Part shown: positions 3,549 through 64,000 of the stretch, piece by piece
Layout: every line of letters begins with the position of its first letter
Numbering within the stretch: the first letter of the stretch is position 1
NCBI GenBank assembly: GCA_002269645.1
Contig: NIVC01000633.1
Location: forward strand, 330,394 to 394,393
DNA length: 64,000 nt
Reading direction: 5' to 3'
Source of the DNA: Macrostomum lignano
Lineage: Eukaryota
The notes under the pieces: generated by a model
Database searches by the model: none
The model's input: only the letters and a program-made list of their open reading frames with translations
What the model was told of the DNA's origin: nothing
Position numbers and translations under genes: made by a program

Positions 3549-3551
3549 CAG

Positions 3552-5771: not shown

Positions 5772-5783
5772 AAAAAGCAGGAT

Positions 5784-8554: not shown

Positions 8555-8892
8555 TGTCATGTTTTTACGACCCCGAGGGAACTGATAGGATCTCCCGGTC
8601 ACATGATTCTGGGTAGCAACAAGCTTAGCCAATCAGAAAATTCGACGTGTTCCATTATAACAAACTGCGGTCCAGTTGGCGGCTATTTAAACCGGTGTTT
8701 TTGGCCCGCTCGGACCTCACTCCTCCTGGGACCTTAGCCTAGATTGAGACATCCCGGAGCGCGACCGCGTTTCTTGATCCCCGGATTGCAACTTCCCCCA
8801 TCATCATCAAGGACGAGTCGCCCCGGTCATCAGCAGCGAACATCAAAGTTAAGAGCATCACCTGCTAGCTATCTGCGAAGACCGTGACATCA
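8555..8892 (+). mobile_element. Candidate solo LTR (338 bp)
   Basis: TGTCA...GTGACATCA termini, GCACC on both sides (8550-8554 and 8893-8897), internal CCAAT box (AGCCAATCAG) and TATA-like CTATTTAAA. Confidence 0.45.
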
Positions 8893-11800: not shown

Positions 11801-12717
11801 ATGAAAATGAATACTATAACAAATTTAATGGAAAAGATTGGTGATAGATTATTAATTAATAAATAGCCAATAGCCATATAGATAAAGAGCAAAATAAAAA
11901 ATGGTTATATGTAGAAGTGGGTAGCTAGCTATAGTTTTTATAGTGCATTATGCTTATTTGAAAGATTTTAGTTAGATTGCCTAATATTTTAAAAAATTTA
12001 AAGGCTAGATTAGTAATATAATATGAATATAGGTTTTGGTTGGCTAGCTGCTCTAATTTAATGTAAATGATATTAGTGTTTTAAAATTGTTTTTTTTGTG
12101 TTTTGTAAGTTTTATAAAAGTGTAAACACTATCTAACCCAATTGATCTAGCTAGCTAACAAGGCAACTAAGGCAATAAGCAAGTATTCATATTGCAAGAC
12201 CAATCAACTAAGTGCCAAACTAGACATTGCAATGAGATATTTATGTATAAAATTGAAAAATGAACAAACCTAAAGAAACACTAACATTAAATCAAAGAGA
12301 AATTTTCTATAAAGCAAAAAGGTCTATATTTCATAAATATAAAATGGCTTTCTAATTTTACATATAGCTATATATTGTGTTTTTTTACTAACTAGGTACT
12401 AAAAAAGCTAATTAAAGATATAAATTTTTATTCAACTTTTGCTTTTCTAAATAATATAGGCCTAAACAACACTATTCTAAATTAAATTTCAATGAGTCTT
12501 GAATTTGGCTCAGAAGTCGTGTCAGGACAGTTTTATCATAGCTATTTAGTAGAGCTCTGCTCTGATACAATGATTAATGCACCAAATATATTTAGCAAAA
12601 AATCAAGGTTTAAAACAGAAAAATAACAGAAAAACAGAAAACAGAATAATAATGTGCTATAATTCTCATTGTAGCCACTTTCTGCAATAAATGCATGCTT
12701 ATCAACTGAGCTTGGAG

Positions 12718-12852
12718 ATGTCTGACAAGCCAAAGCCAAAGGCGCGCAAACCTCAACAACAACAACAACAGCAACAACAACAACAACAGCAACAACAACA
12801 ACAGCAACAACAACAACAGCAACAACAACAACAACAACAACAGCAACAACAA

Positions 12853-12888
<36 letters not shown>

Positions 12889-22905: not shown

Positions 22906-23514
22906 TAGCTGATAACTTGAACCTGCTCCCATACCATCAACACAAACTCTGTCTGCATTCGCCTAAAGCTCGCAACTGCGTTCCTTATCTGCGCCAATTA
23001 GCAATTTTTATCATTTCGTTCCTGTCGTCTTAATAATAATGCTGTTCGCAAATCTGAGAAAAATACTTTAAAATATTAGCTGGACTGTCAACTTGCTTAT
23101 CTGGCATTAATTTATTTAATCCGTGTGACGCCCGTGTCTGCAGCTGCGCCTCTTGCATAAAGTGCACAGTAAAAGTACATTTGCTACTTCTATAATTTAA
23201 CTTTCGGAGGCGCCTCCCATTGTGCCCAGCTTGTCGCTCTGGGCTTCGCCGATGAAAATCCTGAGTAAATTGGCTTCTTGAGTTCTCGCGTGCTCACTGC
23301 TGCCTCGCGTGCCATTCTGAGCACTCGCCGTGCTCTCCACACTTGTACGGGCCTCAACGAGCCCCAGCCTCTGTCCATATCGTTCCCAGTCAGTCCCAGT
23401 CTCCCTGCTGAACTCTGCCATCAAATTTAATTGCCATGCTGTGGCACCCGACTTCAGGATTTGGCAGATTGTCTGAGTCCTTAATTTCAATTATCACTTA
23501 TCTGTGGAATTACC

Positions 23515-24845
23515 TATCTCAATACTCCCAACCTTCATACCCCTAATCTCAAAAATCCCCTACCTTCAAAACCCTAATCTCAATACTCCCCAACTTTCAT
23601 ACCCCCAATCTCAATAATCCCCAACCTTCATACCCCAATCTCAATAATCCCCAACCTTCACACCCCAATCTCAATACTCCCCAACTTTCATACCCCCAAT
23701 CTCAATACTCCCCAACTTTCATACCCCAATCTCAATACTCCCCAACTTTCATACCCCCAATCTCAATAATCCCCAACCTTCACACCCCAATCTCAATAAT
23801 CCCTAACCTTCACACCCCAATCTCAATAATCCCCAACCTTCACACCCCAATCTCAGTAATCTCCAACCTTCACAACCCCAATCTCAATAATCCCCAACCT
23901 TCACACCCCAATCTCAAAAATCCCCTACCTTCACAACCCCAATCTCGATAATCCCCTGCCTTCACAACCCCAATCTCGATAATCCACTGTCTTCAAAACC
24001 CCAATCTCAGTAATCCCTACTAATCCCCTGCCTTCACAACCCCAATCTCAATAATCCCCAACCTTCACAACCCCAATCTCAACCATCCCCTGCCTTCACA
24101 ACCCCATGTCGATAATCCCCTGTCTTCACAACCCCAATCTCGATCATCCCCTGCCTTCACAACCCCAATCTCAATAATCCCTAACTTTCACAACCCCAAT
24201 CTCAATTATCCCAAACCTTCACAACCCCAATCTCAACCATCCCCAACCTTCACAACCCCAATATCAACCATCCCCTGTCTTCACAACCCCAATCTCGATC
24301 ATCCCCTGCCTTCACAACCCCAATCTCGAGCATCCCCTGCCTTCACAACCCCAATCTCGAGCATCCCCTGCCTTCACAACCCCAATATCAACCATCCCCT
24401 GTCTTTACAACCCCAATCTCGATCATCCCCTGCCTTCACAACCCCAATCTCGATCATCCCCTGCCTTCACAACCCCAATCTCGATCATCCCCTGCCTTCA
24501 CAACCCCAATCTCGAGCATCCCCTGCCTTCACAACCCTAATATCAACCATCCCCTGTCTTTACAACCCCAATCTCGAGCATCCCCTGCCTTCACAACCCC
24601 AATCTCAATCATCCCCTGCCTTCACAACCCCAATCTCAATCATCCCCTGTCTTTACAACCCCAATCTCAATCATCCCCTGTCTTTACAACCCCAATCTCA
24701 ATCATCCCCTGTCTTTACAACCCCAATCTCGATCATCCCCTGTCTTTACAACCCCAATCTCGATCATCCCCTGTCTTTACAACCCCAATCTCAATCATCC
24801 CCTGTCTTTACAACCCCAATCTCAATCATCCCCAAGCTTCACAAC
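23515..24845. repeat. About 30-32 bp C-rich minisatellite with polarized unit variants
   Basis: Unit CCCCAATCTCAATAATCCCCAACCTTCACAA drifting to ...GATCATCCCCTG(C/T)CTT. Confidence 0.95.
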
Positions 24846-25282
24846 CTTTTCTCTTTTCCTGCAGCTTTTATATAAAAAGAAGCCACTCCAGGCGGTCCAT
24901 GGGCTTCTAAAAATGCTACATATAAAAGTCCATGGGCGGACGCAGTCTCCGCAATCGCTGCAGCAATTACTCACGGAGACCTGCTCTCCATTCAGCTGCG
25001 CCCTTCCTTCCTTCCTGAGGGTCTACCTGCCCCATTGTGTCTCCGAGCCTGCCCCAGCCTCCGCGCTTCATCTGTCTCAGCTTCGGCGAACCGAATCATC
25101 GGAGACCCGAGCTCTCCTAGGCCGGGAGTGCGCATCTAATTAACAGCCCCCCAGCCGTGTGCTGCCCCGCTGTTTCCATAAGTGCTCCCGCTTCATCAGC
25201 CTCTGCGAACCTGATGTTTGCGTGTGCGGCTTCCCCTTACCTCAGCCCGCGTGTCCCCTCTCGGGTTCCGCCTGTGCGTGTC

Positions 25283-26348
25283 TGAGTCATGCACCTGTGC
25301 CTGTTGTGTAACAGTGGGACTGTACCTGTGCCTGTTGTGTAACAGTGGGCTGGTTGTACCTGTGCCTGTTGTGTAACAGTGGGGCTGTACCTGTTGTGTA
25401 ACAGTGGGACTGTACCTGTGCCTGATGTGTAACAGTGGGCTGGTTGCACCTGTGCCTGATGTGTAACAGTGGGGCTGTACCTGTTGTGTAACAGTGGGAC
25501 TGTACCTGTGCCTGATGTGTAACAGTGGGGCTGTACCTGTGCCTGTTGTGTAACAGTGGGGCTGTACCTGTGCCTGTTGTGTAACAGTGGGGCTGTACCT
25601 GTGCCTGATGTGTAACAGTGGGGCTGTACCTGTGCCTGATGTGTAGCAGTGGGACTGTACCTGTGCCTGATGTGTAACAGTGGGCCTGTGCCTGATGTGT
25701 AACAGTGGGCTGGTTGTACCTGTGCCTGATGTGTAACAGTGGGACTGTATCTGTGCCTAATGTGTAACTGGGCTGGCTGTACCTGTGCCTGATGTGTAAC
25801 AGTGGGGCTGTATCTGTGCCTGATGTGTAACAGTGGGACTGTACCTGTGCCTGATGTGTAACAGTGGGACTGTACCTGTGCCTGATGTGTAACAGTGGGA
25901 CTGTATCTGTGCCTGATGTGTAACAGTGGGGCTGTAACTGTGCCTGATGTGTAACAGTGGGACTGTATCTGTGCCTGATGTGTAGCAGTGGGCTGGTTGT
26001 ACCTGTGCCTGATGTGTAACAGTGGGGCTGTACCTGTGCCTGTTGTGTAACAGTGGGACTGTACCTGTGCCTGATGTGTAACAGTGGGACTGTGCCTGAT
26101 GTGTAACAGTGGGCTGGCTGTACCTGTGCCTGATGTGTAACAGTGGGCTGGCTGTACCTGTGCCTGATGTGTAACAGTGGGCTGGCTGTACCTGTGCCTG
26201 ATGTGTAACAGTGGGCTGGCTGTACCTGTGCCTGATGTGTAACAGTGGGGCTGTACCTGTGCCTGATGTGTAACAGTGGGCTGGCTGTACCTGTGCCTGA
26301 TGTGTAACAGTGGGCTGGCTGTACCTATGCCTGATGTGTAACAGTGGG
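25283..26348. repeat. About 31-35 bp minisatellite
   Basis: Unit TGTACCTGTGCCTGATGTGTAACAGTGGG(GC/AC/CTGGC). Confidence 0.95.
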
Positions 26349-26729
26349 AGGCTCGTACATGTACCAATTTCAATCCAGTTTCTCCCGCTTCCCTACGTGC
26401 ATGCTGTACTCTTGTGCGGATCTATTCTGTAGCAAAAATCCGTTTTTCCCTTCTGCTATCAGCGCTGCCTCTGCTGCACCTGCCTACCGAGCGCTAAAAG
26501 CCGCTGTCAGCCCCGTCTCCCCTTCTCTTCTGTCTCCCCTCGCATTGAAAGGATTCTGGATCTTATTTGCTACATTTATTTCGAATCCGTGCCCCTGTAC
26601 CTGAGCAGCTGAGGCGGCTTCGCTCCAGGCTTCATAGAATCTCTCATTTTTGATCTGATTCGGTTCGCATGAACATCGGACCTTGTCATCCGGGATGCAG
26701 TGAAGTAGGCGGCCCAATCAATGCAGCCG

Positions 26730-28253: not shown

Positions 28254-29573
28254 TCAGAACAGCGGCGTCGCGAAGACGCCTTCTGGCAGGGCTCTGAACT
28301 TCTTCTCCATGCACCGCCGGAACTCCTCCATGGTGATGGCATCTGGGTCCGCCGGCTGAACCTCGTCGAACAGCTGCTCGAGCTTCTCCGCGGGAGCCTC
28401 GGGCCGCACGGCCGGGCGCACCTGGTCCCCGCACAGGTCGAAGATTGCGGCGGAGACGGCCAGCGCATCCTGCCGGGAGATCTGGCCGTCCGAGTCCACG
28501 TCGTACAGGCGGAACACCCACCGCAGGCGCTCGTCCGCCGGCCCCCGGGTCAGCATGGACAGGGCGCAGACTAGCTCCTCGGTGGTGACCACTCCGTCCC
28601 TGTCGCAGTCCACCGTGTTGAAGACGTAGTGCGCAAACAGGGTGGGGTTGCCCATGGGGAACAGGTAGGCCATGGCGTCCGCGAACTGCCGGCGGCGCAG
28701 CAGGCCGCTGGGGCACTGCTGCTTGAATGCCCGGTAGATCGACTTCACCTCCTCCCGGCTGAAGCGGGTGCGCTGCACCATCTCGCTCAGCGGCGGCGGC
28801 CGGTACCTGTCTCCCAGCCGGCTGCTGCCGCCGAAATTGCCGAATCCGGCGCCGACGATGCCGTCCTTGGCGCGACGCCGGACAAGGAACGGCCTGGCGA
28901 GGATCTCGAGGAGCCGCAGGCGGTAGCGCGCCCGCAGCCGGTCCAGCAGGCCGCAGCCGGTTGGCAGTTCTGCGTCCTCCGCCTGGCGCCGCTCGCGCCT
29001 CTGCTGCGGAGTCTCCACATCGGCGAGCTGCTGCTGCAGGAGGCTGGCCAGCTCGTCCGGCAGGCGGTCCAGGGAGATCTGGTAGCCGCTGGAGCTCATC
29101 AGCGACACGATGGACGGCCGGCCGTGCGCCACGCCCGGCACCGCGAGCCGGTGCTCCGAGCCGAGCTGCGAGCTGTGGCGCGACTCGCGGCGGGCGCTGG
29201 ACGACCGACGGCTGGCGTTGCCGCCGCTTCCGTCGTCCAGGCGCTGTGGGCTGAGCAGCGGTTGCAGAGTCTGCACGCGGCGGGTTGAGTTCTCGCTGCT
29301 GCGGCGGGCCATCGGCTCCGATGACTCAGCCTGTTGTTGTTGCTGCTGCTGCTGGTGCTGCTGCTGCCTCTGCCGCAGCACCGTGCAGGAGCTGGACCGG
29401 CCCGCCACCAGCAGCGAGTAATGGGGCGTCGTCGGCTGCTGCTGCCGGTCCTTCGCAATGGCCGCTGCGGACGAGGGCGTCGCAATGAGCGTCTCGGCGC
29501 TCTCGCCGGCCTCGGCGTCCGGCGAAGTCAGCGTGATGCGGATGTCCCTCTGCTGGCCGGTCATTTTGTTCAT
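28254..29573 (-). CDS. KCNIP: KChIP-like (Kv channel-interacting, neuronal calcium sensor family) EF-hand protein with long low-complexity N-terminus
   Basis: C-terminal ~185 aa carry the KChIP pattern: TRFSREEVKSIYRAFKQQCPSG (inactive EF1 with CPSG), DCDRDGVVTTEE, LRWVFRLYDVDSDGQIS, RPAVRPEAP. First ATG of the ORF at 29573; the frame is open up to 29852, so the 5' end is uncertain. Confidence 0.88.
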   Translation of the reverse strand: MNKMTGQQRDIRITLTSPDAEAGESAETLIATPSSAAAIAKDRQQQPTTPHYSLLVAGRSSSCTVLRQRQQQHQQQQQQQQAESSEPMARRSSENSTRRVQTLQPLLSPQRLDDGSGGNASRRSSSARRESRHSSQLGSEHRLAVPGVAHGRPSIVSLMSSSGYQISLDRLPDELASLLQQQLADVETPQQRRERRQAEDAELPTGCGLLDRLRARYRLRLLEILARPFLVRRRAKDGIVGAGFGNFGGSSRLGDRYRPPPLSEMVQRTRFSREEVKSIYRAFKQQCPSGLLRRRQFADAMAYLFPMGNPTLFAHYVFNTVDCDRDGVVTTEELVCALSMLTRGPADERLRWVFRLYDVDSDGQISRQDALAVSAAIFDLCGDQVRPAVRPEAPAEKLEQLFDEVQPADPDAITMEEFRRCMEKKFRALPEGVFATPLF

Positions 29574-30169
29574 ATCGAAGCTGAGAGCTGAGAGCTGCGC
29601 GCGGTTGAGTCTGGCTGAGCAGTTCTGGTGGGAGGAGCGCAGCGGAGATGTTTTACTGTGGAGGCGAAAGCATCCGAGGCGTAGGAAGAAAGAGAAAAGC
29701 TCTGATTGGCTGCCCTCCCCAAAACCCTCTGGGCGCCGGCCTCTGTCGAGCTCCGGGTGCCGGCGGTCTTGAGGAATTTCTGATATCTGTCCGTCCTCAG
29801 CCTCCCTCCCTGCCTGCGCTGGCGGCTCTGGGACAGGGAAAATCCTTATCACAGATCTCGGGGATTATGCCGTGCCGTCTCTTTCCTCACTGCTTCTTTC
29901 GGATGAAAATATGCTTTTGCTGCTTCCCTGTTACCCTCTTGATCCCTCATCCCGGCAGATACATATCCCAGCTATTAATCTATCCCTAACAACAATGACC
30001 TTTTTCCAATCGGCCTCAAGAGGGCGGCAGAGTTTGAGATCCGATGCAGGGAATTTTAATTTTGCGACTGTACTGGCAGGGTAGGAGGTTCTGATGGACA
30101 GTCTGAGAAGCTGATATTCCGTTTGGGTTGTGAGACATTAGATAGGCAGGCTGCGGCATCAGAGCCTTA

Positions 30170-42992: not shown

Positions 42993-45900
42993 CAGAACAA
43001 CAACAACAACAAACTACAGCAACCCTGGGCAAGCCAATTAAGTTGGTTTGCTGTCAAAATGCGCGCGCAAGCGCAGATTTGCGCAGAGCAGCGAGTCCGC
43101 GGGGGTCGGAGATTTCAGCGTCTCTTAAAAGCAGGTCGACGAAACGCAGACTTTTCGCCTGACCAAGCCGCCGCGGCCCTTGAAGGGATGGCAGCAGCAC
43201 GTCTTGAAGCGGCTCAGGGCAGTACTGCTCTGCCCAGATGACGTGGCCGCGGCCAGCTGTAGGCGCCGGATGTGCAGCAGCTGGCTGGGTCGGGAGAGCT
43301 GGGCCCGTCGGTATAACTCGTCATTGCTGGTGTTGGTGGTGGCGGTCGGCGAGTAGTGGACACCGAAGGGGCTCTTAGGAGTCCAGCGTGAGCGGCCTCG
43401 AGTTGCCGCTCCTGCGGGCCGTTCAGTGTCCACGTTTCAGCGTTGTAAAGGAGGACGTTTTCAATGACGGTCTGGAACAGCCGCCCTTTCAGCCGATCCG
43501 GCAGCGTGGGGCTCTGCAGGACAGTCCGCACGGTGCGGAATGCGCCCCACGCAAGCGCCCTGCGCCTTGCCATGTCCTCCGTGATGCTTGGCACCAGACC
43601 ACCGAGGTGGACGAACTCTTTGCAGCGGGGCAGCAACGCCACCTGCCCGTTCGTGCAGCGGCAGTAGATCTCAGCTGGGAGGTTCGTCGGGACGGTCAGC
43701 ACCATCGTCTTTTTGGTATTCACGGACAGTCCGATCGCAGCGGCCGCCGCCGTCAGCTGGTCTAGCAGGCGTTGAGCTCCTTCAGCTGTGCTAGACAGCA
43801 GCGCTGGATCGTCCCCGTACGCTAGGACGGAGAGTCGCTTCTCGGGGTGCCGCCTGCTTGTTCTGCGGCAGAGCAGGAATCCTTTGGAGAATCCTTTGAA
43901 CAGAAAAGGAGCCAAGGTGTCCCCTTGGAGAACGCCGGAAAACGTGTCAAAGAAGTCGGAAAGGCCATCTGGTGTCACAAGTGCCGCCCTAGTTTCCTGG
44001 TACAGAGCTATCACAGCCGTCACCAGCTGCTCGGGTACGTGATACGCGCGCAGGATGTTCGCGATAACCCGCCTCGACACCGAGTCAAAGGCCTTCAGGA
44101 AGTCTACGAAGATGCAGATGATGGTCGACTGGTGGATGCGGGCCTCTTCTAGAATTCGACGCAGAGCGAGAATTTGGGTCACGGTGCCTCTGCCTGGCCG
44201 GAATCCATTTTGCTCGCGCCGAAGGAACGGGTCCAGCACTGGCTGCAGCCGCGACAGCAGAACTCTGTTAAATAGCTCAGCTGTGCAGGACATTAGCGAA
44301 ATCCCGCGATGTTCTTCGACCTTGACGGAACCTGGTTTCTTTGGGATCCCAACGATATGCGCAGTCCGCCACTCAGCAAGGGCGGGGCCCCCAGCTAGCA
44401 CGTAGTTCATCACTCGTGTGACTTCCAGCGCGACTTGCGGGAGGCGCAGCACTTCGACAGGCACGTCATCTGGTTCAGTAGCCTTGTTGCCTGGCGTCTT
44501 CTTTGCAAGTTGGAGCACCTCGTCGATGGTGATGGGGCTGATGTTAAAAAGGACTTCTCTTCTTGCAGTGCAACCTCCGCCGTGGGCAATGACATGTCCC
44601 TTAGCGGCATCGGAGGTGCGTCGACGATGCCAGACAAGAAAGTCCGCAGTTCGTTTCGCCTCTTTTCGGGGTGTCACTCGCCAGTTTCAGAGCGTTGCGT
44701 TTCTTGCGGCTTGTACGCTGATTGACGACCGACCAGACGGCATGCGGTTTCTTGTCGGGACCGGCGTCTGTGATCTCCTGAATAACAACGGTTTCTACCG
44801 CAGTGCGTTCCCGGGCCTTAAATGTCTCCGCTAGAGTCTTCTCTCCTTTCTCCGCAGGCTGTCCGCTCCTCCACAGTCTCTCCACTGTCATCCGGGCCTG
44901 CCGCAGCATTTCGTCGTTCTGCCACACTGGCCGACTCTTTGCTGCTGGCTTCACCAGCGGTAGCGTTTTGGTAGCGGCGGCTTGGATGGCAGCGCTGATG
45001 TCCGGGTACTCGGCTGGGGTTTTTGTGCCCGGCCGTCCTTCCAGCGCCTCGGCAAATGCCAGACAGAAGCGAACACTTGTAAACCGGGTCGCGTAGGGCA
45101 CGGAAGTAGCGCTTAGGCTGTTTTTTGGTGGTCTATGGATCCGTAAGGCGCAGGTCGCAGTAGAGCAGCCTGTGGTCTAATCGCACTTCCAGCGGAGCCA
45201 CTGTTTCGCTGTTGGTCACTCGTCGTCGCTCTCGTCGGCGAAGCAGCACGTGGTCGAGCTGTGCAAGTCCCTTCCTATCAAATTTTTCACACACGTGACC
45301 GTTTGCCAATTGGCCGTTGGCCGTTTGCAAACGTTGCCAATCTGTGAAGCGGCTTCCTGAACAGCGTGTTTACTGAGACCAGGTCGTGGCAGTCCCATGA
45401 AATCCACTTAGAGCGTTATAATATTATTGTTTTCGCGTGGGGTTACATAGCGGGTGCGCTCGGACTTTAGCATGGCAGCGTTGAGGTCTCCGGGGGTACC
45501 AGTACAGTGTCACGTTGAGTGATCTTCTCCAGCTGCGCTGACAGGAACTCCAGGACTGCCGGCGGTGCTCCACCGCTAGATGCGCATGGTCGTGGGCAAG
45601 GACTTCCTAGACTAACTAGACTAACTAGTCTAGAAGTCCTTGGTCGTGGGGTGCATACAAGTATAGGCACGGAAGAGCCGCATACGCGTGTGGAATCGAA
45701 TGTCGACGCGCAAAAGCCGCGGTGACAGGCTCTTACAGCGTGCACTTTGCTGAAGCCTTGGCCCTGTTAGAAGGCCAATTCCTCCCCGGTCTTTCAAATC
45801 TGCTACATATTAGCTGATGTAGAAGCCAACCGCTGCCTAATGTGCTCCTGGTGAAGCCCAGGCTCGACCGTTAAGGAGAGCTCTTGCAGCATAATTATAT

Positions 45901-46385: not shown

Positions 46386-47484
46386 TATTCTTTTTGTGAC
46401 TAAGAATTCAACATTCTTTTTGAATGCAACATTCTTTTCGAATGCAACAACAGCGAAATTGGGGGCATGTCCGTTGCTTCCCTGCTGATCCTCCGTTCAG
46501 AAGCAAGTAAGAGTCGATTCGGCTCCGACTCAGAACAATAAATTATGTCTAGCAAAGTTACGATCTGCAAATCTTTTTGCAAATTTTTTCTGGTAGTCGT
46601 TAATAACGACAAAAATTTATAGCAGACTTTAGGTGAAAATGCACGAATAATTGCAAGATCTCCGTTTCACACGCTTTGCCTTTTTTAACTATAAGAAACG
46701 AACTCGACGCGTTTAACTGTTCTTTAGGCCTCTAAGCAACTGTATGTAGTTTTCTGTAACCATAAGTATATAGTGGCTACGAGCAGAACAAAGATTTAAA
46801 AAAGAGTTAAATTGATTTTAGAATAAAATACAAGATTTCAAATTTTTTGTATATTGGAAACTGGGTTAGAATATAGAATAAAATCTGATTTTTTACCTAG
46901 CGTCGTTTCGTCGATGACGATGTCGCTTATTCACACAGCTATTCACACAGTTAAAAGTTGTTACATGGTTAGGCCTATAAAGAAATATATATAGAAATAC
47001 CACAGAAATATCATAGAATATTATATAGACCTAGGCCTTAGATTGCTATCTATACTAGTGTTTTTACGTCCAATTAATCAATATTATAACTAGGCCCTAT
47101 TATTATGTGCACATTGTAGACCTAGGCCTACTAGGTCTGACTACTCTTGTCCACTTTTTGGTGTAGGCCTATGTCATCTATTGAAATGGTGTAATAACTA
47201 TTGTGCTATAATATTTGCCTTTTAACTCTACTATAGACATCACATCAGCAGTCAAACTTTTTGCACATAGCATTCTCATAGAGGTTAGTGTTGATGGTAG
47301 TTTTCTCTGCTGCCAGTTTGTCTGCCATTCTTTTGTTTGCAAAAATACAATGCAGTCATTTTGTCTGCCACTGAATATTAGAGGGTCTATTAACACTAAA
47401 TACAATGCTAATACCTAGCCTATTATAATATTAAAAAATAAATATCAATATATCTTAAAATCGTAGAAACTGTCTAACCTATAT

Positions 47485-50400
47485 TAGGGTGTCCAGTGAG
47501 CTATTTTTTCAATGTATGATTTTTGAAAAATATGAAAATGACCTAATTTCAAATGTCTGTAAATCGGTAAGTATGTAAGCTACAGCAATGAGTTTATACT
47601 TTTTAGAAAGTTAGGACTTATATCTACAACATAAAAAAAGAATCAAGCGATTTCATTTTATACAAAAAAGTTACAGCATGGCAAAGTTGTGCCATTTTTA
47701 CAGAAATTTAAAATTGAGGCAAAATCCAAAAAAGAAAGTGGGTTTTGTAGAATTGGTCCTACATAAAAACTGAACTGTTTTTCATGATTTTTTTCAACAC
47801 TGGAGCTTAGTAAACATGTATGAGTACCTTAGCCGTAGGAGCTATTTTTTGAAGAAAAAATTTTTTCATGTACAAGCATGTCATGTACATGAAAATTGGT
47901 GAATGTCAGTTTTTCAAGATCGGGTGTAAGCATGCCCCTGAAACTTTATGTAGTTGTTATGGCAACCAAATGAAGCAGTTTCAGCAAAAGTTCGACCTCC
48001 TAACTATAAACGCAAGTGCTGGGCAAAAATTTCACCAAATACATGTAAAATCTCATAGGAAAATGTAAAACTTCAAATATTGGATGGCCTGTTTGAAGCA
48101 CGAATGTTTCCTTTGCTCAAAATGTAGCCTAACGCACCCCAAATCAGGTCTAGAAAGGATTTCTATGTAGGCCAAAACGCAAAGGCACCATTGGCCATAG
48201 ACTGTAGAATGTTTCTTGGAAATACACTGCGGAGATAGGGAAAAAACAAAACTGGGCATTTCGCAGCTTCTAATGGGGACTATTTGACTCTGCTTTGACC
48301 CAAATTGAAATTGATGTATATGAGCTGTTGATCTAAACAACTTATATGATAGTAATGTTGCTTTTAGTTAAGGAATTGTAATTACCTATACTACATTATC
48401 CACTCTCACTTGATCATTTCAGTTTAGACTCAATATTCAAGAAGTTCAGTAACTCTATTGAGCTACTCGTCGTCTGACAGGACATGAAGGTCGCCCTTCA
48501 AATAGTCTTCGTACAAGTTATATTCAAAGGTTGTGCTGCCATGGTCATCAAACACAACCTTGAACTTATGCTCAAGGATGTCTGCATTGGTACCCGGAAC
48601 ACGGCGGACAACGACACCCTGCTCTCAGACCTCGCCGTCGGTGTAGCCAAACAAAACTTCCACACGTCGGCCTTCCAGCTGTGGGAGGTTGCTCAGCGAG
48701 GGGGGAATAGCAGCAGCCTGCTGCTCTGCAATGGCCTCGGCAGAGTCTGACTCCGAATCAGAAGTCGGCAGCGGCGCTCGCTTTTGCCTGCTCGAAGCTC
48801 TACCCTGGCCACGGCCACGCCCCTGACCACGTCCGTGACCCCGACCGCGTGCCCGACTGCCTGACGCGCTAGCACCACGCCCGCTGCCTGCTGCGCCACC
48901 TTGGTGCTGCTGGCCAGTCGTAGCTGCCACCTGACGGGCCTCCAGCTTCTTGGTGACAGCAGAGCGGACAAGCTCTGCCCGCTCATTACAGGGCCGGATG
49001 TTGGTGTTGCCTTGGGTGTCGACCGCGACGGCAACTGCTGCCTTTTCAGCCTCCAGATGGGCAATTACTTGTCGCAGGTTGGCAGTCAGGGCGGGCAGGC
49101 TGCGTCTTACACCGGCTTGCGACAGGTTGAGCAGGGCAGCCAGGTCCCTTGGCAGAGTAGGCTCTGCATGGAAGTAAGTTTGTAGGTGATAATGAATTCT
49201 CCAAATTACCTGATTCCTGAACGTTTGAAAGTCAACTTTCAGCAAAATTTTCGTGAAACTTTCTTTGCTAAAGACCAATTTTAAAATTTACTTCCTACTT
49301 AAAACCAACACTACGCTGTCTTACTCATGGCTTTCTGCAGACGCAGCTGCGCTGTCACAGCTTGCTCGTGACGTCCAGATGGGAGCTGCTGCAGCGCCTC
49401 CGTCATGTCGCTGACGGTAATCCAGACGCCGCCGAACTCGTGAACAGCGCGCATGTGGTCACGGAGGGAGCAGTCCTTGGCGACTCTCTTGCGGTGCACT
49501 GCCTCGATGCGCGCCTGCTGCAACTGCTGCCGTGCCTTGTCGATCGCCTGTTTCGTCGCCTTTGCCCATGCCTCAACTTTCCCGGAAATCTTCCGAGCCC
49601 GAGAAAGCATGGCCTCCTGCTCATCTCGAGTTTTTTGATGCAGCCACTGCTCCGTAGCGTTCTGCTGAAAGAGGACATACGCCTCTCGAGCCAATGGGCG
49701 CATGTGCGGCTTGCAAGTCACCGTGCTGTCCAGCACAGCAAAATTGCGCTCGGAGCGACGTTGTCTTTCGGCGCATCCGCTGTCAGACGGCGCTGCTCGT
49801 CGGACAAATTGCGCAGGGCACCGCCGGGCAAGTGGTCGCAGACCTCACGACGAAGCAGCACGAGCATGTATGCAGCGGTGACCTGCAGCGCCTGGCTCAG
49901 TAGATCGTTGTCCAGCTGCGACGCATCGGCCGTCAACGCACTCCAAACGTCGCCAGCGTCATCGGGCGCTAGCACTGCCCCAGCAAGGTCAGGAAATGGG
50001 CCGCTCTGGTCGCCCGAAAAGCGGAAGCCGTCTGCCGTGGCCAGCTCCTCCAGCCAGTCGCAGAGTTGCTCGTAGCGCTGGTTCATGTCCAGAATTCGGA
50101 CTGTTGACTGCCGGTTCAGCATGCGATTCAGTAGCGATTGCCATGGCATTGGTGACCTGCAATCTGGGTCGACCCCTTGATTGAGCAATAGGGGTGCCAG
50201 GCCCAGCGCTACTGGCTGCACCAGTCTTGGGTGTCGTTGAGTTGGACATAGAAATAAATTCTTATGAAATATTATGTAGTATTCAATTTAAATGCTAGCA
50301 GAAGCACTGGAGTGAGGGTTAGAAATGGAGCGATAAAATTGAGTATGAGTATATTGTTCTGACATAATTTACAATTACAATTTATATTATGACATAATAG

Positions 50401-51370
50401 CATCTGAAAGTGAAATAGTATATTTTGACATGATAAATGACATAAACTCACAGTAAAGCCAGATACTCATAATATTAGTCATATTTATATATTAAGGACA
50501 AGCCAGAAAATATGGAAACAGAAACTTATGAAGTTATGAAACATTTTTTATACCATATACATGTCATTACCCATTTATTTATAACAATACAGAGAGAGAA
50601 GCAGTGCAATGAATTTTTTATTCATTGCTTCTCTCTCTGTATCTGTAAAAATTCTTATAACTTTTTTATTATTCAACATATCTTTAAAAGTAATATGTCA
50701 TTTTACTCATAACATCCAGTTGTATTTGTTAAAAAAGTAAAAACCCTGACATTCTAACTTAAAACTGTCTACTAGACACTATCACCCAGTTTGCCTTCCT
50801 GAACCCTTATTTACAAATTTTCCTTAAAAAAATTCTCCTCACCTACAGCTATACTTAAACTGCACAATTTTTATGTTTCCTAAAAGAACTAAAAGAAATC
50901 TAAAGTTTGACACTAAGAAAGTCTGTCTAAGTATAGTACAAGTATTTTAAGGGGACTTTAAAGTAAAAAAGTATGACTCCGGCAGCATAAAAAAAACATT
51001 TTTTATTAACAGAACATCCTGCAGCAAAAAACTGCTAAGCAGGAGAACTTTTTTAGTTACAAATTATATTGCACAGTTAAATTACCTAAAAATTGACACC
51101 AAAGTCAAAGAAGTAGCTTAACTAACAAAAAAGTTATTTACACTTAATTAAAGAAAAGAGTAAAAATGACGTGGAATTGGCTTCACTTTCTAATGTATTA
51201 AGAATACGGAAAAAACGCATTCTTTTTAAAACAAAAATACTCATAACTTTTTTATTACTTGACCAAATTAAAAAAGTGAAGTGTCATTTTACTCATAACA
51301 TCCAGGTCTATAAGTTATATAAGTCAAAACCAAAAAATTTCAGAAAAAAAAATTCTCACTGGACACCCTA
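47485..51370 (-). mobile_element. hAT-like DNA transposon with 16-bp TIRs, 7-bp TSD and partial transposase
   Basis: TAGGGTGTCCAGTGAG (47485-47500) and its reverse complement CTCACTGGACACCCTA (51355-51370); CCTATAT at 47478-47484 and 51371-51377; internal transposase-like coding sequence. Confidence 0.88.
48463..50221 (-). pseudogene. Transposase C-terminal half with a Spin/Ssty-like Tudor domain; one frameshift, one intron, one premature stop
   Basis: DHLPGG...DNVA/SERNFAVLD (1-nt frameshift near 49755), GT-AG intron 49324-49164 restoring frame, TGA at 48627-48625, then frame continues to ...YNLYEDYLKGDLHVLSDDE-TAG (48463). Confidence 0.75.
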
Positions 51371-51434
51371 CCTATATCAGTATATGTTATATTTATATTT
51401 GCAATATATTTATATTTGCTAACTGTATACCAAA

Positions 51435-56352: not shown

Positions 56353-59300
56353 ATGTCAGCGGCGCCACCTCCATCTAGCGGCAGTGGCGGCGCGAAGCCT
56401 AAGCGATCGTCAATTGGTGCCGCCGCCTCGCCAGCGCCTGTGGATGCCAAACGGGCTCGGCTGGCTGCGCCTGTTGCGCCCAGTTTAGTGGAGTTGCGCC
56501 GGGCCTACCACGACCACGTAGCCGAGCTCAGCTACCTTCAGGCTGGCAACAATCTATTAGACTATCTGCTGTGGCGTCAGTCCTGCCCGAAATCTCTCTT
56601 AGCCGCTTTGAAAGCCGAAGCGCTCGACGAAGACGATCGAAGATGGATTGGCGAGATGGAGAAGTCCGGGCGAGTGCGCGAATTGTTTCCTCGGTAAAAA
56701 TTTTTTGCTTCTTTATCGACATGCTATGAGGGGTCTCAATGAGTCTTTTTAGGTTTCGGGTTTTTAGAAATTTGAGGATAGATTTTTTGAACTGCATTTC
56801 CAACAGAAAGCATACCGAAACTGTAAAGAAACACGATGAGAAATTATGTATATAAGTATGCCATCAGCCAGTTTCACGGCAGCTCCTAAAACCCCGGTTC
56901 CATTTCACCAGGCCAGCCACGGTGCCGCAGGAATGCGAGCAGGCGGCGACAACAGGCAATCCTATTGTAAACTACCTGCAGCTGCCGAGGCGCAGCTCGC
57001 CGCCTTCTCAACAGCAGCGTCAGCTGAGGCGAACTTCGTCTCAGCAGTCCAGCCAGGCCTCTCCGCAGCCGTCTCTGGCGTCCCAGACTTCTTCATCTCC
57101 GACAAAACAGGAAAAAGAAGCAGAAATTGTTGACCAGGCGAAGCACGAGGCTCAGGTGATGCAGAAGGTGGCCGAGCTCAAAGCGGCCGGTCTTTGGTCC
57201 AGCAAGCGGCTGCCGAAATGCCTGGAGCCGCCCAGGCCCAAGTCGCACTGGGACTATTTGCTAGAAGAGATGCAATGGCTGGCCACGGATTTTATGCAAG
57301 AGAGAAAGTTTCGTCGCGTCTTTTCTCGCAAGGTAAGCATTAGGTTGAGATACTTTGATAAATATGAACTTCACTGCTTTCATTCTCGTGATTGACAAAT
57401 CATTCCCAGATGTGCCTGATGGTTCAGCGACATTTCCGCGAAAAAGAGGACAGAGAGCGGCGCCAGGAGAAGGAAGAATTTCATAATTTAAAGCGCATCG
57501 CCTCTCAGTGCGCCAGGATGGTGCGCGAGTGGTGGCTGGGAATTCAAAAGGTGAGGCAACTCTGCGGCTAAAATGGTATACTCATACTCAAGTGAACTCA
57601 TCGCGAGCTGCCGATTTATTGCGCGAACAGATTATTTCCTTAAAATCTGGACCGTTAAGCAGCTCGCTACATTAGCACTTATTCTTTTTCACTGACACAG
57701 AAATTCGCTCTACCCGATGCTTCTGTGTTATAAATTAGAATTACATTGCTTCTATCGGCGCAAACTGTTTTAATAATGCCTATTTTTAACGAGGGAGATT
57801 GGATTAATCGCTAATCTTGGCAACCCGCAGTTCGTGGAGTTCAAGCACAGCAACAGGCTAGAGGAGAAGCGACGAAAAGCTCTCGATCTGCATTTAAACT
57901 TTATCGTTGACCAGACTGAAAAGTACTCGGAGTGGCTTGTCGAAGGCCTCAACGCCGGCGGCGCCAGCAGCAGTGGAGGCGCCGGGTCCGTCGCCGGCAG
58001 AGATGACGAAGAATTCGTGCCGGCCGCATCGGATCTGGACGCCGACATGGATGACGAGGAGACCATAGCCAAGGCCGAGGCTGAGGACTTGGCCAATGCG
58101 CAGGATGGCGACGACGAAATTGCCGCCCTGCAGCGCGACATGGACCAGCCAATGGAAGAGCTTCTGCGCAGCCTGCCGCCTGAGATTCTTGAGAAGCCGG
58201 CCAGTCTTCCGGGCTCGGAGGCTGGCACTGATGATGATAAAGACAAAGGCGACACCGGCGACGAAGACAGCGAGTTTCGCATGGACTCCGACGACGCCGA
58301 GGCCGAGGATGTCGAAGATACAATCGCCGAAGAGGAGGCGGCTGTGGGCGGCAGCGGCGATGCCGGCGCCGAGGTCGACGAGCTGGCGGAGGAGGCCGAG
58401 CTGCCGCTTGAAGAGCTACTGAAACGCTATCGCGGCGCGTTCGAAGGAGGTCACAGCGAAGCCGACGAGGCGGCGTCTGTGGCAGAAAAAAGCGGCGGCG
58501 AAGACGGTACCGCCTCCGGCAAGTCTGGCGACGCCTCGGACAACACAGACAACGAAGGCGACGAAGCCTCTGCAGGCGCCAAATCGGCCATTGCTGAGCT
58601 GGCCGAGATGGATGCCACTTCCGATACCGGCGACGCCAATGGTGAGGACGTCGAGGCGCGAAGGCGATGTCGGGAGAAGCTGGATGAAGGCTATCGGGAG
58701 CTGGCGGCTGAGGCGCTGTCCGCGCTGCCGAAGGGATTCACACTGAACTCCACTAAGATTAGCGTGCCTATTCCGCACCTGCTGCGCGGTGGCAGCCTTC
58801 GCGAGTACCAGATTGTTGGCCTCGATTGGCTGGCCACACTCTACGATAAGCGGCTTAATGGCATTCTTGCTGACGAAATGGGTCTTGGCAAAACCATCCA
58901 GACCATCGCCCTGCTGGCGCATCTGGCCTGCGATCGCGGTGTCTGGGGGCCGCATCTCATTGTTGTGCCAACGAGCGTCATGCTCAACTGGGAGATGGAG
59001 TTCAAGAAGTGGTGCCCCGGCTTCAAAATTCTTACCTACTTCGGCTCTCTAAAAGAGCGCAAGGAGAAGCGCAAAGGCTGGACAAAGACGAACGCATTCC
59101 ACGTGTGCATCACCTCTTACAAGTTGGCCATTCAGGATTCCCGCTGCTTCAAGCTCAAGAAATGGAAGTACCTGATTCTTGACGAGGCGCAGAACATCAA
59201 GAACTTTAAGTCGCAGCGCTGGCAGACGCTTCTCACATTCAACAGTCAGAGGCGCCTTCTATTAACTGGAACGCCGTTGCAGAACTCCCTCATGGAGCTG

Positions 59301-62300
59301 TGGTCGCTAATGCATTTTCTAATGCCTCAGGTCTTTCAGTCTCACAGAGAGTTTCGCGAATGGTTTGCCAACCCCCTCACCGGCATGGTGGAGGGCACAC
59401 AGGAGTACAGCGACCAGCTGGTACGGCGACTTCACAAGGTGAGATAATTGGCTTGCTTGGACTTTTTTCTAGACAAGAAAACGATTAGAAACGCTGAACC
59501 GGTTGAATTCAAACGAGATCATCAATCACTCGGTCAGGGCCTTCTTGTACCAGAATCGAGCTAAGTATAAGTATTGCAATATCTACTGATCTGAAAACTA
59601 TATAGGACTATCATTTTACTTTCAAAACAGGTGTTGAGGCCTTTCCTTCTTCGACGTTTAAAAAAGGACGTCGAGAAGCAGATGCCAAAGAAATACGAAC
59701 ACGTCGTCATGTGCCGACTGTCCAAGCGTCAGCGGTACCTGTACGACGACTTCATGTCGCGTGCGTCAACCAAGGAGACTCTGGCTAGCGGCCATTTCAT
59801 GAGCGTCATCAATGTGCTAATGCAGCTGCGCAAGGTCTGCAACCACCCGAATCTGTTCGAGGAGCGGCCCACTGTGTCGCCGCTGCGTGTTGACCCAATT
59901 CGCATTGACATGCCCGGCGATGTTCTCCGACTGCGAGACTACGATCCTATGCGCCAAGTTCTGCTGGAGACTCTGTGGCCAAACATGTGCGAGATGGAGC
60001 GCGACCTGCCCAGCTTCGTTGCCAGCCGGGTGGAGCAGCTTCGACCGAAGCGTCCGCTAATTCAAGAGCTCGCAGACGCTGCCGCACAGGATGCCGCAAT
60101 TGGCAGTTCAGACGGCTCCTTCCCGGACTCTGTATTTAATTTTCGCGGCTTACCAGTGTCTCGCAAACCGTTTATCTCGCGAGCCACCCTCAAGGAGTCT
60201 AAGCTGGAATTGGCAAAGACAGCAGCACTGCCACCAGGTTTGTAAAGAAGTCAATTTCACAAAAATCCTTATTGGTTTTCTTCCTTTTTACATAATAAAA
60301 ACGATCATCATCCACCTTAAATGAAGAATATTTCACAACAAATATTTATATAGATTAGACATTTATTATTGGTGGATAAGAATCCGTACTTTGCAAAAAT
60401 CGCACATTATTTTTTTATTATAAAACCCGCCCTCTGAGGCTCCGACAGTCCCGATCTCGAACAGATTCCTTCCTTAGGGTTGCTTTCATAAGACCGAAAT
60501 TTCATAACGCCGAAAGACACCTGCCTACACAATACCGAAATTTCACAACGCCGAAACTACTGCATGGTCCTTCATAATCATAAGACCTAAATTTCACATC
60601 GTATAGAAAACTCGATATGCAAGATTGCAATGCCCTACATAAGAACGAAACTTCATAAGACTGAAATTTTACCTCGTAGAAAACTTAATACAACAAGGAT
60701 CATGCAGAATTTTCAGCGTTGTGAAATTTCGGTCTTATGAAGGCCAAGGGCCTTGCATATTGAGTTTTCTACAATGTGAAATGAGATGTCTCGGCGTTGT
60801 GATTGTGAACATTCCGTCTTTTGAGGCTCCCCCCTTAACCTTCCTTAAGCCCATGCAAAGGAATCTCACTAATTCATTCACACAGTCACGAACCACTCTG
60901 TCGTGTCTGCCTCTTGTGTTGTGTATGTATCTTCTTTGCTTCTTTGCTTTTGACTTGAGATTTGGGGTTCCCGCGACGCATTGAATGACTGTCTCTCTTC
61001 TCTCTCCACTGAGTGTACAACGTGTATGTACGTAAAAACACCCTGGGCCCGGGGTTTGACTTAAAATCGATATTTCTTCTAGAATTTTCTACGCCCTCCC
61101 ACCCTCCCATACCCTATTCCAGCCCTGTGCTACTCGCCTCCTCATTGGCTGACACGCCTCTATCACGCCCCTCTGGCGTGCACACCACACAACCAACCCC
61201 CCACGGGCCTCTAGGTCTTGCCCCATATGAAATCACCCGTTATATAAACTGCTCTGTCCACGACCCGAGGCCCCGCTGGTCCCTTCCCCTTTGCTTATCG
61301 TACGAATACAGTGGTGGGATTGTTCCAAATCCAAAGCATTTATCTTATGCCGTTTAGTTTGACTACTGGCTGAAGCAGATTTCAGCGCTAAATAAAGACA
61401 CTTTGTCTTCGCAAGTTTTCCCCTTCTCAAATCAATACCTGAATAAAAATGGTTAAACGAAATTTCTGTTATCATCATCAATCCATGGCGCCAGTGGTAA
61501 GTGAAGTCCAACCACTTTTCGTGTTGAATTCCAATCTAGAAGCACAATTCGAATCTAGACCGAAATTGAAAGAAATATTGACTGCTACAATTTACCCAGT
61601 ATGAATTTTAAGACCTCCGTGCAGTCACACCCTCGTTACTGAACAATTAAGTTATTGTTCTCAGTAATCGTTCTGTCGCGATTTGGCCGCACTCTGGTGT
61701 TTAGCAGTCAAAGATGATCCGGCTAAAAGTGAGAAACGTCTCTAGCAGATTTTACGAGTCGTTTTCGAACATTTAGCGACAGTTTTTTTCAAACTAACGT
61801 TTTCTATACTTAACATGACATGATTACTTGTTTCTCTTGGCTGACTAAGCTATATGCTATGCAGATTCCGAGATTTTATGATATTTTAATAGCATCCAGG
61901 AACAAAGCATTTGATCTTGTTCTCTACTAAAGGTTTCCTCCCTCTCTCCTACTTCATTTGAAGGATCTCGGCCCCAGCCTGAGAAGGTTGACACCAGGCA
62001 TCTATGCAAGAAGCTCGCCAGCAAGTATGCAATTGGTATGTAGACTTTTTCTTTTTTCTTATCAATTTTATTATAAAGCAAAACTAGAAACTTGGCCGTT
62101 TTCATTCGTGTGATTCCGACAATACGCGTATTCTCGGCATCGAATACGACAAATAGCAGCCAGTTATTTTACTGACTGTCTAATTAAACTGGCCTAACAG
62201 CAGCTGCTTTCATTATTTACGTGCTGTCGCCATTTTAACCCGACTGTGCTGGCGGTGACAGCCCCCGAGTAATGACACAATTATTGCAAATCCACCATCA

Positions 62301-64000
62301 GCAATAAATCTTTCTCATTGCTTTTGCCGCTCTTCCGTTCTTCTCAACAGAAGCTCCCGTCGATCCCAACGCCCAGCTGCCAGATGGCATTCGGCAGATT
62401 CGGCAGCAGGCGCGCCACGATCGAGTCAGCTTGCTGGACCGACTCAGCGATCGCCGATGCCAGTTCCAGCCGGTGTACGGCTGCGACCTGCTCGCCGCCG
62501 TCTCCATTTTCCGGCACCCGACAGAGCCGCACTCGGTGCTGCCCAGCTGGCGACGCGGCTGCTTGTGGACCAGCAGCACTCAGCGGACTCAGCCTCGTGC
62601 CCAGTCCTACTGTCTGATGCGCGGCCACCTACACTGCCTCAAGTCTCAGCTGAGAAAGTCCGATCCTCGCCTGCTGTTTGCCTCCACCAGCGGCCTGGAA
62701 TGCCTCGTTAATCGGCCCGAGGATCGGCTGGTTGAGCTTCGCGATGTTATTGACAGGTGCGATTCTTCTATCCCTATTGTAATGTGAAATCCGAACTTGA
62801 TTTCATTTTGAAATGATTATAAAATCCTGCAATTCAGATATTTAGCTGATGTCAAACCAAGACGATCTAAGCATGATCCCCGCTCTTGTCTACCTAAGAT
62901 AGTAGGCCTTTGATTAATCAATTTCTAGTGATTTCTTTCACCACTGCCTCATTGCAGATTTTGCTTCGCGGTGCCTCCCGTACTGGCCGGCGAGCCGTTT
63001 CTCTCCTGCCCTTGGCAGCAGCGCCAAGACGCTGTCGAGCGCGAATCTGCAATCCGCAGCCAGAGCAGCCGGTGCGACCTGTTGCACCCGATCGCCAGTC
63101 GCCAAGCGGTGCAGTTCCCAGACGGCCGGCTGATTCAGTACGACTGCGGCAAGCTGCAGAGTCTGGATCTGCTGCTGAAACGACTGAAGCCTAAGGGCCA
63201 CCGGGTGCTCATTTTCACCCAGATGGCGCGCATGCTGGACATCCTAGAGCAGTTCCTGTCGCATCACGGCCACATCTACCTGCGGCTTGACGGCACAACT
63301 CGAGTTGAGCAGCGCCAGATTCTCATGGAAAGATTCAATGCTGACAGCCGAATTTTTGTGTTCATTCTGAGCACCCGGTCTGGCGGCCTGGGCGTCAACC
63401 TCACCGGCGCCGATACTGTGGTGTTCTACGACTCCGACTGGAACCCCACCATGGATGCGCAGGCTCAGGATCGCTGCCATCGCATCGGCCAGACTAGGGA
63501 TGTTCACATTTACAGGTGAGCAGGCCTGTTGTCCTGTAATAATGTAGCCTATTTCATTTATTGCAGTCTCCCGCTTCCGAGACTTCTACCAATTAACTCA
63601 GTTGGAATTCATCGGCTGAAAAGTGACGGCTAACATTACATATTAATTGTAGCAGAGTAAATTTTCCTATTCTTGCTCCATTTCTGTAATAATTCCAGGC
63701 AATAATAGGCAGATGGCTTTGCAACAGTTGCTTTAAAAACTATTTTAGTGTCAACAGTTCTGTGCTCTGTGTATCTAAGCTAAACATAATAAGCATTGCA
63801 CATTGCTATTTTATCCAGGCTGATCAGCGAGAAGACAGTCGAAGAAAACATTCTGAAGAAAGCCAACCAGAAACGCTGGCTAAACGATGTCGCCATTGAG
63901 GGAGGCAACTTCACCGCCGCTTTCTTTCAACAGAACACCATCAAGGAGCTGTTTTCTGAACCGACTGGCCTGGATGACTTGGTTGCCAAGAAGAAGACGC
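56353..64000 (+). CDS. SRCAP: Helicase Domino / SRCAP (SWR1-type SNF2 ATPase), 5' portion; continues beyond the window
   Basis: Exons 56353-56693, 56912-57332, 57410-57550, 57831-59438, 59631-60237, 62351-62756, 62958-63515, 63819-64000+, with consistent phases. HSA domain (PKSHWDYLLEEMQWLATDF), acidic region, ILADEMGLGKT, LILDEAQ, QLRKVCNHP, split ATPase and HELICc motifs LSTRSGGLGVNLTGADTVVFYDSDWNPTMDAQAQDRCHRIGQ. Confidence 0.96.
60485..60741. repeat. Inverted-repeat element with internal direct repeats in Domino intron 5 (MITE-like)
   Basis: TTCATAAGACCGAAATTTCA(T/C)AACGC near 60485 and its reverse complement at 60716-60741; further CCGAAATTTCA / CATAAGACC copies inside. Confidence 0.55.

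Follow-up and report, generated by a model that had tools for sequence, protein, structure and literature searches.

Does a DNA transposon of the flatworm Macrostomum lignano carry its own chromatin reader? The question arises from a stretch of 64,000 nucleotides (GenBank assembly GCA_002269645.1, contig NIVC01000633.1, positions 330,394 to 394,393 of the forward strand), called here the window and numbered from its first letter. An element with perfect 16-bp terminal inverted repeats (TIRs) occupies positions 47485–51370 of this window and carries a gene on the minus strand. The initial annotation, made from the sequence alone, described it as a hAT-like transposon whose transposase ends in a Spindlin (Spin/Ssty)-like Tudor domain. 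We find that the element derives from a 6.56-kb cut-and-paste DNA transposon: it is a recent insertion that has suffered an internal deletion and is non-autonomous. The transposases of the family to which it belongs combine a Hermes-like DDE core with a Spindlin-type domain whose aromatic cage is conserved.

The domain is encoded at 48463–48687 on the minus strand and is interrupted by a stop. The C-terminal translation reads ...LEGRRVEVLFGYTDGEV up to an in-frame TGA at 48625–48627 and EQGVVVRRVPGTNADILEHKFKVVFDDHGSTTFEYNLYEDYLKGDLHVLSDDE from there to the natural stop at 48463–48465. Taken alone (79 residues), the window domain gives no match in Pfam; in a phmmer search of the PDB its E-value is 0.024, Spindlins make up all of the top 15 matches, and among the alignments shown the best pair it with the second Tudor domain (Tudor 2) of Spindlin-1. 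A profile built from a 20-sequence alignment of relatives matches Spindlin-1 with E = 5.7e-34, scoring 61.7 bits for Tudor 2, 36 for Tudor 1 and 18.5 for Tudor 3, and 10 of the 20 members individually match the Pfam family Spin-Ssty (PF02513), the best at 3.1e-14. The Pfam comparison proposed in the initial annotation thus succeeds for the family and fails for the window sequence on its own. An AlphaFold model of the window domain (predicted local distance difference test, pLDDT, 83.3) leads to the same proteins: the top 42 Foldseek matches are all Spindlins 1–4, with query-normalized template-modelling (TM) scores of 0.61–0.69 and 23–30% identity, and the best-superposed of them reach TM scores of about 0.66–0.69 and differ by a root-mean-square deviation of about 1.8–2.3 Å over about 70 residues. 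The Spin/Ssty identity first suggested for the domain is upheld by profile and by fold.

Tudor 2 of Spindlin-1 is the pocket for trimethylated lysine 4 of histone H3 (H3K4me3), and its cage residues are F141, W151, Y170 and Y177. The columns aligned with these four positions hold an aromatic residue in 14 of the 20 sequences, W in 17, Y or F in all 20 and Y, W or F in 18, respectively; an Asp neighbouring the cage columns is invariant. The premature TGA of the window falls in the near-invariant Trp column, where the initial annotation had placed it, predicting that intact copies would read TGG. A second M. lignano copy (L001, on contig NIVC01000089.1) indeed has TGG at this position, the translation of its domain running ...FGYTDGEVWEQGVVV... 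and including DGEVWEQGVV. The four cage residues are F, stop, F and F in the window and F, W, F and F in L001, exactly the alignment that had been proposed.

When the joined translation from the window was used as query in an exhaustive HMMER search, 619 relatives were found. The full-length ones have about 1,000–1,400 amino acids, and their C-terminal third is the part to which the window aligns. Family members occur in M. lignano, in amphioxus (Branchiostoma lanceolatum) and in the spotted gar (Lepisosteus oculatus), with many more on contigs of metagenomes and run assemblies. A word-based protein search retrieved no match for the N-terminal 383 amino acids of the window translation, and only eight and two proteins for the profiles A2 and A4, respectively; scoring in this procedure was limited to the 8,000 candidates with the most words in common, most of which may have been low-complexity or coiled-coil proteins. 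Of 155 retrieved proteins, 72 contain the domain according to a local hidden Markov model. Among the 34 relatives that extend at least 150 residues beyond a conserved ‘GLW’ motif, 30 carry it, so the domain, whose presence in other members had been in question, is a standing part of this transposase family. Spin-Ssty is also the only Pfam family that recurs among the members. Five proteins (P0012, P0014, P0096, P0141 and P0155, the last being gar LOC107077401) have two repeats in tandem, and these could possibly be an intermediate toward the three-repeat architecture of Spindlins. In the family transposase, the Hermes/hAT-type DDE core is succeeded by a coiled coil and a small ‘GLW’ module, and the Spindlin-type domain forms the very C-terminus.

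The catalytic core had to be studied in relatives, as its region is deleted in the window copy. In alignment A3 (numbering of relative P0001), D393 is conserved in 51 of 51 sequences, D475 in 60 of 61, C511 and H514 in 65 of 65, and E790 in 67 of 69. The last corresponds to the Glu of the ERNF motif, which the initial annotation had singled out as a candidate catalytic residue. P0001 was modelled with AlphaFold from an alignment of 69 relatives (mean pLDDT 86.5, predicted TM score 0.70); the model has a helical domain and then a coiled coil at its N-terminus. Strands β1–β3 lie at 388–422, β4 at 469–474 and β5 at 507–510, with D393 on β1, D475 just past β4 and the CxxH motif after β5; an all-α insertion (about 540–780) follows, and E790 lies on a helix at 787–802. 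The model therefore shows an RNase H-like DDE domain split by a large all-α insertion, as in Hermes, together with a D/D/E triad and a CxxH motif after the second Asp. In a Foldseek search of the PDB, Hermes structures fill the first ten places (E = 7e-7 to 1e-4, probability 1.0, 560–605 aligned columns); the next is ISCth4, at E = 0.03.

The L001 copy connects this core with the window element. It is a 6,560-bp element at 6908–13467 of its locus with the same 16-bp ends, set in unrelated flanking DNA, and this full-length copy encodes the whole Hermes-like core within the same TIRs. The two copies are 99.05% identical over 2,642 bp and 97.0% identical over 1,243 bp, and L001 retains 2,712 bp (8122–10833) that the window copy has lost, which makes the latter an internal-deletion derivative. 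Internally deleted derivatives with filler DNA are known from Ds, which derives from Ac. The L001 locus also harbours the annotated protein P0002 (BOX15_Mlig005917g5), which is 100% identical to the window translation over 125 residues.

Read along the minus strand, the remnant of the gene in the window is made up as follows. The first 40 codons (MSNSTTPKTG...AMAIAT, 50130–50249) encode the N-terminus as found in P0002, save for one Q/R difference. A 7-bp filler, GAATCGC, at the deletion junction (50123–50129) connects them to the part of the protein that, in full-length numbering, begins at about residue 655. The filler stands in for the 2,712 bp present in L001 and nearly repeats the sequence CAATCGC a few bases upstream; it looks templated, as from interrupted gap repair. 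Next comes the tail of the all-α insertion domain (MLNRQ...HLPGG...DNVAP, 49751–50122), which is the part identical to P0002, at its residues 660–784. A loss of one nucleotide at about 49751 then shifts the frame in the codon preceding the catalytic Glu (49751–49753, DNVAP/ERNF), so that the two peptides share one base. This frameshift also occurs in L001, where it ends the P0002 gene model, and it could be either a true mutation or a CC/CCC assembly error. Downstream of it, 49325–49751 encodes the ERNF helix with the catalytic Glu, a coiled coil and a GGVW module, and aligns to residues 790–930 of P0001. Sequence and peptide mapping place an AT-rich intron of 161 nt (GTAAG...CAG) at 49164–49324, which L001 has as well, and its AG acceptor (49165–49164) preserves the frame (...QKAM-K-PTLPRD...) into the last exon (48463–49163). 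This exon encodes an arginine–glycine (RG)-rich linker, GSGRGASASGSRARGRGHGRGQGRGRGQGR (48799–48888), and the stop-interrupted domain; the linker, the in-frame TGA and the minus-strand translation first given for this region were all reproduced.

The open reading frame (ORF) of the window had been taken for a nearly whole transposase. This is not so: residues 41 to 655 or thereabouts (about 615 residues) are missing, including both catalytic Asp and the CxxH motif. The window copy is a dead remnant that cannot make transposase: part of its interior is deleted, its frame is shifted at the catalytic Glu, and its cage Trp codon has become a stop. Its ends are intact, and it could still be mobilized in trans.

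These ends are TAGGGTGTCCAGTGAG at 47485–47500 on the plus strand, the terminus on the 3′ side of the gene and also the one that bounds L001, and its exact reverse complement at 51355–51370 on the minus strand, the gene-relative 5′ end. The perfect TIRs first described are thereby confirmed, and neither the sequence nor its reverse complement has a further match in the 64-kb window. Between TIRs and gene lie two non-coding subterminal regions: a 3′ one (47501–48462), part of the 2,642-bp stretch shared with L001, in which a check for ORFs revealed nothing convincing, and a 5′ one (50250–51354), 97% identical to L001. The target-site duplication (TSD) CCTATAT flanks the element at 47478–47484 and, as an identical 7-mer, at 51371–51377, as had been claimed. 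The window alone would also permit an 8-bp duplication, ACCTATAT, using the final A of the right TIR. This reading is ruled out by insertions of related elements: the eighth base mismatches in L002 and L007, which fixes the TSD at 7 bp.

The same type of ends recurs across the family. A sister M. lignano element, which encodes P0003, is present in two copies that are 99.9% identical (L002, at 8593–15887, and L003); its ends are TAGGCTGTCCAGTGAG and TAGACTGTCCAGTGAG, also written TAGGC/TAGAC-TGTCCAGTGAG, and its TSDs are CCTATAA in L002 and GTATAAT in L003. In amphioxus, two copies on different chromosomes (L007, encoding P0038, and L008, at 5115–11149, encoding P0157) share the ends TAGGGGGTTCAG and are 99.3% identical; the TSD of L007 is TATCTTG. 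An element of a metagenomic eukaryote (L004/L006, encoding P0029) has the ends TAGGCATTCCACA and the TSD TTTAAAC, assembled from two contigs. Duplications of 7 bp are thus seen at five insertions in three lineages. TIRs of hAT elements start with the consensus YARNG, which is fitted by the TAGGG of the window, L001 and amphioxus elements and partly fitted by the TAGGC or TAGAC of the sister and metagenomic elements. A search for the TIRs of the P0028 and P0158 elements on their metagenomic contigs found none.

Two side observations concern these termini. All three M. lignano TSDs (CCTATAT, CCTATAA and GTATAAT) share a TATA core, which could be a target preference or could merely mirror AT-rich surroundings. 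Beside a family member on a metagenomic contig lies a 268-bp element (L009, 7491–7758) that resembles a miniature inverted-repeat transposable element, with inverted ends TAGGGCCTGGAATT... and flanks that match over 6–7 bp; this may be a miniature form derived from the family.

The termini also bear on the idea that the coding region is a fragment of a host gene captured by an unrelated non-autonomous element (transduplication), in which case the Tudor-like domain would be irrelevant to transposition. The window copy by itself might suggest as much, with its lack of any encoded catalytic Asp and with a GC-rich coding block set in an otherwise AT-rich element. However, the full-length copy encodes the entire Hermes-like core within the same TIRs, and the domain is C-terminal in the same ORF in 30 of 34 relatives. 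Moreover, distant relatives, only 20–45% identical in protein sequence, each lie inside their own TIR-bounded element. Since related termini and 7-bp TSDs accompany proteins as divergent as these, this protein is the transposase of the elements themselves, not cargo that they captured. We regard host-gene capture as close to refuted.

In M. lignano, the gene models P0151, P0154, P0006 and P0004 fuse the transposase to unrelated host sequence and bear UniProt names that refer to host domains (ANK repeat region, peptidase S9, protein kinase). The presence of the transposon appears to have produced chimeric predictions here.

A number of results weigh against taking the family as a hAT family with a fully Spindlin-like reader. 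The Pfam transposase, hAT, DUF659 and DUF4371/4413 models do not match any of 25 full-length members at E ≤ 1, and these hAT and DUF models do not match the window pieces or the relative P0152 at E ≤ 10. The hATC dimerization model (PF05699) finds nothing in the 25 members, the window pieces or P0152, and zf-BED nothing in the window pieces or the 25 members. The family sequence profile A2 retrieves from the PDB Spindlins and coiled-coil noise, and no Hermes. The TSD of 7 bp departs from the canonical 8 bp of hAT elements, and two of the seven insertions have no clean 7-bp TSD: only 5 bp (ATTAT) match in the flanks of L001, and a clean duplication is absent from L008. In the domain itself, Phe replaces Tyr at the equivalent of SPIN1 Y170 in the window, in L001 and in two relatives, and Phe also stands at the Y177 equivalent in the window. 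Most relatives have a single C-terminal repeat in place of the three of Spindlins. Finally, the frameshift common to the window and L001 means that there is no demonstrably intact source copy among these two copies of the subfamily.

Because the sequence profile retrieves no Hermes, the link to hAT rests on structure. Given this, the lack of any hAT, BED or hATC match and the 7-bp TSD, the predicted structure supports calling the family only hAT-like by fold and catalytic layout, and does not demonstrate that it belongs to a named hAT group. The term first used for the element therefore stands as far as the Hermes fold and the conserved D/D/CxxH/E residues go, and fails at the Pfam hAT, BED and hATC level. 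No meaningful family was found by Pfam in the translated pieces of the window. By eye, SERNFAVLD...KP...L...N is similar to the hATC motif. The UniProt name of P0152, which refers to DUF659, could not be reproduced with current Pfam.

The absent Pfam matches to hAT, BED and hATC, the 7-bp TSD and proteins far longer than typical hAT transposases are what one would expect if the element belonged to another DDE superfamily with 7–8-bp TSDs, such as P, or to a separate one, its likeness to hAT then being the fold common to hAT, P, Kolobok and Transib. Galileo, of the P superfamily, and 1360 make 7-bp TSDs. Yet among the 50 Foldseek matches listed for the P0001 model only Hermes is significant, over nearly its whole length, and none is a P-element, Transib/RAG or piggyBac enzyme; no THAP domain was detected by Pfam in family members, and the TAGGG start of the TIRs fits YARNG. 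Such a placement therefore seems improbable to us. The initial annotation had suggested that 7-bp TSDs may be typical of the hATw subgroup. In the open-access papers and preprints found, hATw appears as a RepeatMasker class label only, with no definition of its TSD length; a Repbase paper implies a 7-bp TSD annotation for some hAT families.

What, then, might the Spindlin-type domain do? On balance we think it likely that the element is a copy of a Hermes/hAT-type family whose domain binds a methylated chromatin residue and biases where the element lands. By likeness to Tudor 2 of Spindlin-1, the ligand would most probably be a trimethyl-lysine such as H3K4me3. Binding would tether the transposase to marked chromatin, or activate or license it there, and this tethering would bias the landing sites. 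The insertion sites at hand give an anecdotal hint at most and are too few to test for a promoter preference. In L001, the near end of a TRC8-like gene (minus strand) is about 1.35 kb away from the element on one side, and a DnaJ gene (plus strand) starts 0.9 kb away on the other; the L002 and L008 insertions lie about 1–4 kb from the near ends of flanking genes, and those of L003 and L007 are in introns.

Tudor domains commonly bind methyl-arginine in RG repeats, Tudor 1 of Spindlin-1 reads asymmetrically dimethylated arginine 8 of histone H3 (H3R8me2a), and Spindlin-1 binds SPINDOC. The domain might accordingly bind a methylated non-histone partner, be it the RG linker or host germline or RNA-binding proteins, or recruit a host cofactor, and so regulate activity, localization or escape from silencing without any choice of target. 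In the window the domain is immediately preceded by an RG-rich run, and similar runs precede it in P0006 (M. lignano) and P0007 (on a JGI contig); this RG/RGG-rich linker could be a methyl-arginine site bound by the adjacent domain. The domain profile also matches Tudor 1, at 36 bits. The inspected metagenomic and other distant relatives, however, retain the domain without an RG linker; the best match is Tudor 2 and the cage columns are conserved. We regard a methylated non-histone partner or cofactor as the chief alternative, though a rather unlikely one.

A wider proposal goes beyond the preferred reading of a domain that binds methylated chromatin. It holds that this hAT-like lineage of flatworm, amphioxus and gar directs or licenses its integration at H3K4me3 chromatin through the Spindlin-type reader, and that the Spindlin/Ssty proteins of animals share ancestry with it, either because Spindlins came from the transposon repeat by domestication and triplication or because the transposon took up a host repeat a single time, early in the history of animals. 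As a whole, we consider this unlikely.

The family can be set beside several known systems. With hAT elements (Hermes, Ac and hobo; Hermes structures 4D1Q, 6DWZ, 8EDG and 8SJD) it shares the split RNase H-like DDE core, the CxxH motif after β5, the catalytic Glu in an S/x-E-R-x-F helix, the TAGGG start of the TIRs and internally deleted derivatives with filler DNA. It differs from them in the 7-bp TSD, in the lack of a BED finger and of Pfam hATC, DUF659 or hAT matches, and in longer proteins (1,000–1,200 amino acids) with an N-terminal helical domain, a long coiled coil and about 250 extra residues past the catalytic Glu (coiled coil, ‘GLW’ module and Spin domain). Its domain resembles Spindlin-1 to Spindlin-4 and Ssty (PF02513), and Tudor 2 of Spindlin-1 above all, in sequence (28–30% identity when aligned by structure), fold (about 2 Å) and cage positions. 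Unlike the stand-alone Spindlins with their three repeats, however, it has one repeat (two in a few members) attached to a transposase, and the window copy has Phe at both Tyr positions of the cage.

The RAG2 PHD finger reads H3K4me3, and RAG is mechanistically akin to hAT and Transib. RAG1/RAG2 would be a parallel in working only, by analogy, as a DDE enzyme of cut-and-paste type coupled to a methyl reader of a promoter mark; in that domesticated system the reader, a PHD finger, belongs to a separate subunit, and the two reader domains are not homologous. Chromodomain integrases are found in long terminal repeat (LTR) retrotransposons such as MAGGY and the chromoviruses. With these, and with hAT-Chromo and TE-PHD fusions of transposable elements to such domains, the family would have in common that a mobile element fuses a methyl-lysine reader to its integration enzyme, the role of reader being a prediction here. 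Fusions of hAT Activator with chromodomains in a sponge and TE-PHD fusions in cnidarians were described by Grau-Bove et al. (bioRxiv 10.1101/2021.11.30.470311), in whose paper the word ‘Spin’ is absent. Those fusions are each confined to one or a few related species, whereas here a Spin/Ssty fold is spread over flatworm, amphioxus, gar and metagenomic eukaryotes. A survey keyed to Pfam would probably have missed the present fusion, as the transposase matches no Pfam model. In open-access papers and preprints, we found no description of a fusion of Spindlin/Ssty with a transposase, nor of SPINDOC with a transposase or hAT. The family may already have a consensus entry in Repbase or Dfam, possibly under a hAT sub-label.

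The 5′ subterminal region contains a direct repeat of 99 nt with about 80% identity (50647–50745 and 51233–51331) and an inverted repeat of 30 nt (50577–50652), which may be candidate transposase-binding repeats. In a scan for bacterial promoters and terminators, a model inapplicable to a eukaryote, promoter-like sites in this region were no commoner than in shuffled sequence. A megablast of the element against a phage collection gave no match, as expected.

Elsewhere in the window, a minus-strand ORF with an RVT_1 match (E = 8e-26) at 43214–44677, about 3 kb from the element, is probably part of a non-LTR retrotransposon. On the other side, plus-strand exons with HSA, SNF2-related and Helicase_C domains (56922–63519), the first recognized one about 5.5 kb from the element, are consistent with a chromatin remodeller gene of the SRCAP/Domino/p400 type. 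Exons of an NF-X1-type zinc-finger gene at 14126–19586 are interleaved with long coding-like minisatellites, strongly GC-skewed tandem arrays occupy about 1–4900 and 23000–26400, and a large minus-strand ORF at 28254–29852 ends in EF-hand pairs, which suggests a neuronal-calcium-sensor or KChIP-like protein.

Target choice in cut-and-paste transposition is mostly explained by DNA sequence or by nucleosome-free regions, and to our knowledge DNA transposons with built-in chromatin readers have been little studied. What distinguishes the family is the combination of a hAT-like fold, 7-bp duplications, the lack of a Pfam transposase model and a fused Spindlin-type reader; the functional claim, argued by analogy, is plausible. 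A transposase family without a Pfam model carries a domain of histone-reader type as a near-constant part. In the cases seen, annotation labels its genes ‘uncharacterized’ or merges them with host genes, which defining the family would correct. The family also bears on the origin of the Spindlin/Ssty repeat. If the domain does read H3K4me3, the family would be a natural counterpart to the RAG2 PHD finger and its mark. Chromatin-guided DNA transposition could then be studied in a testable model, from which tools for promoter-directed integration might be derived.

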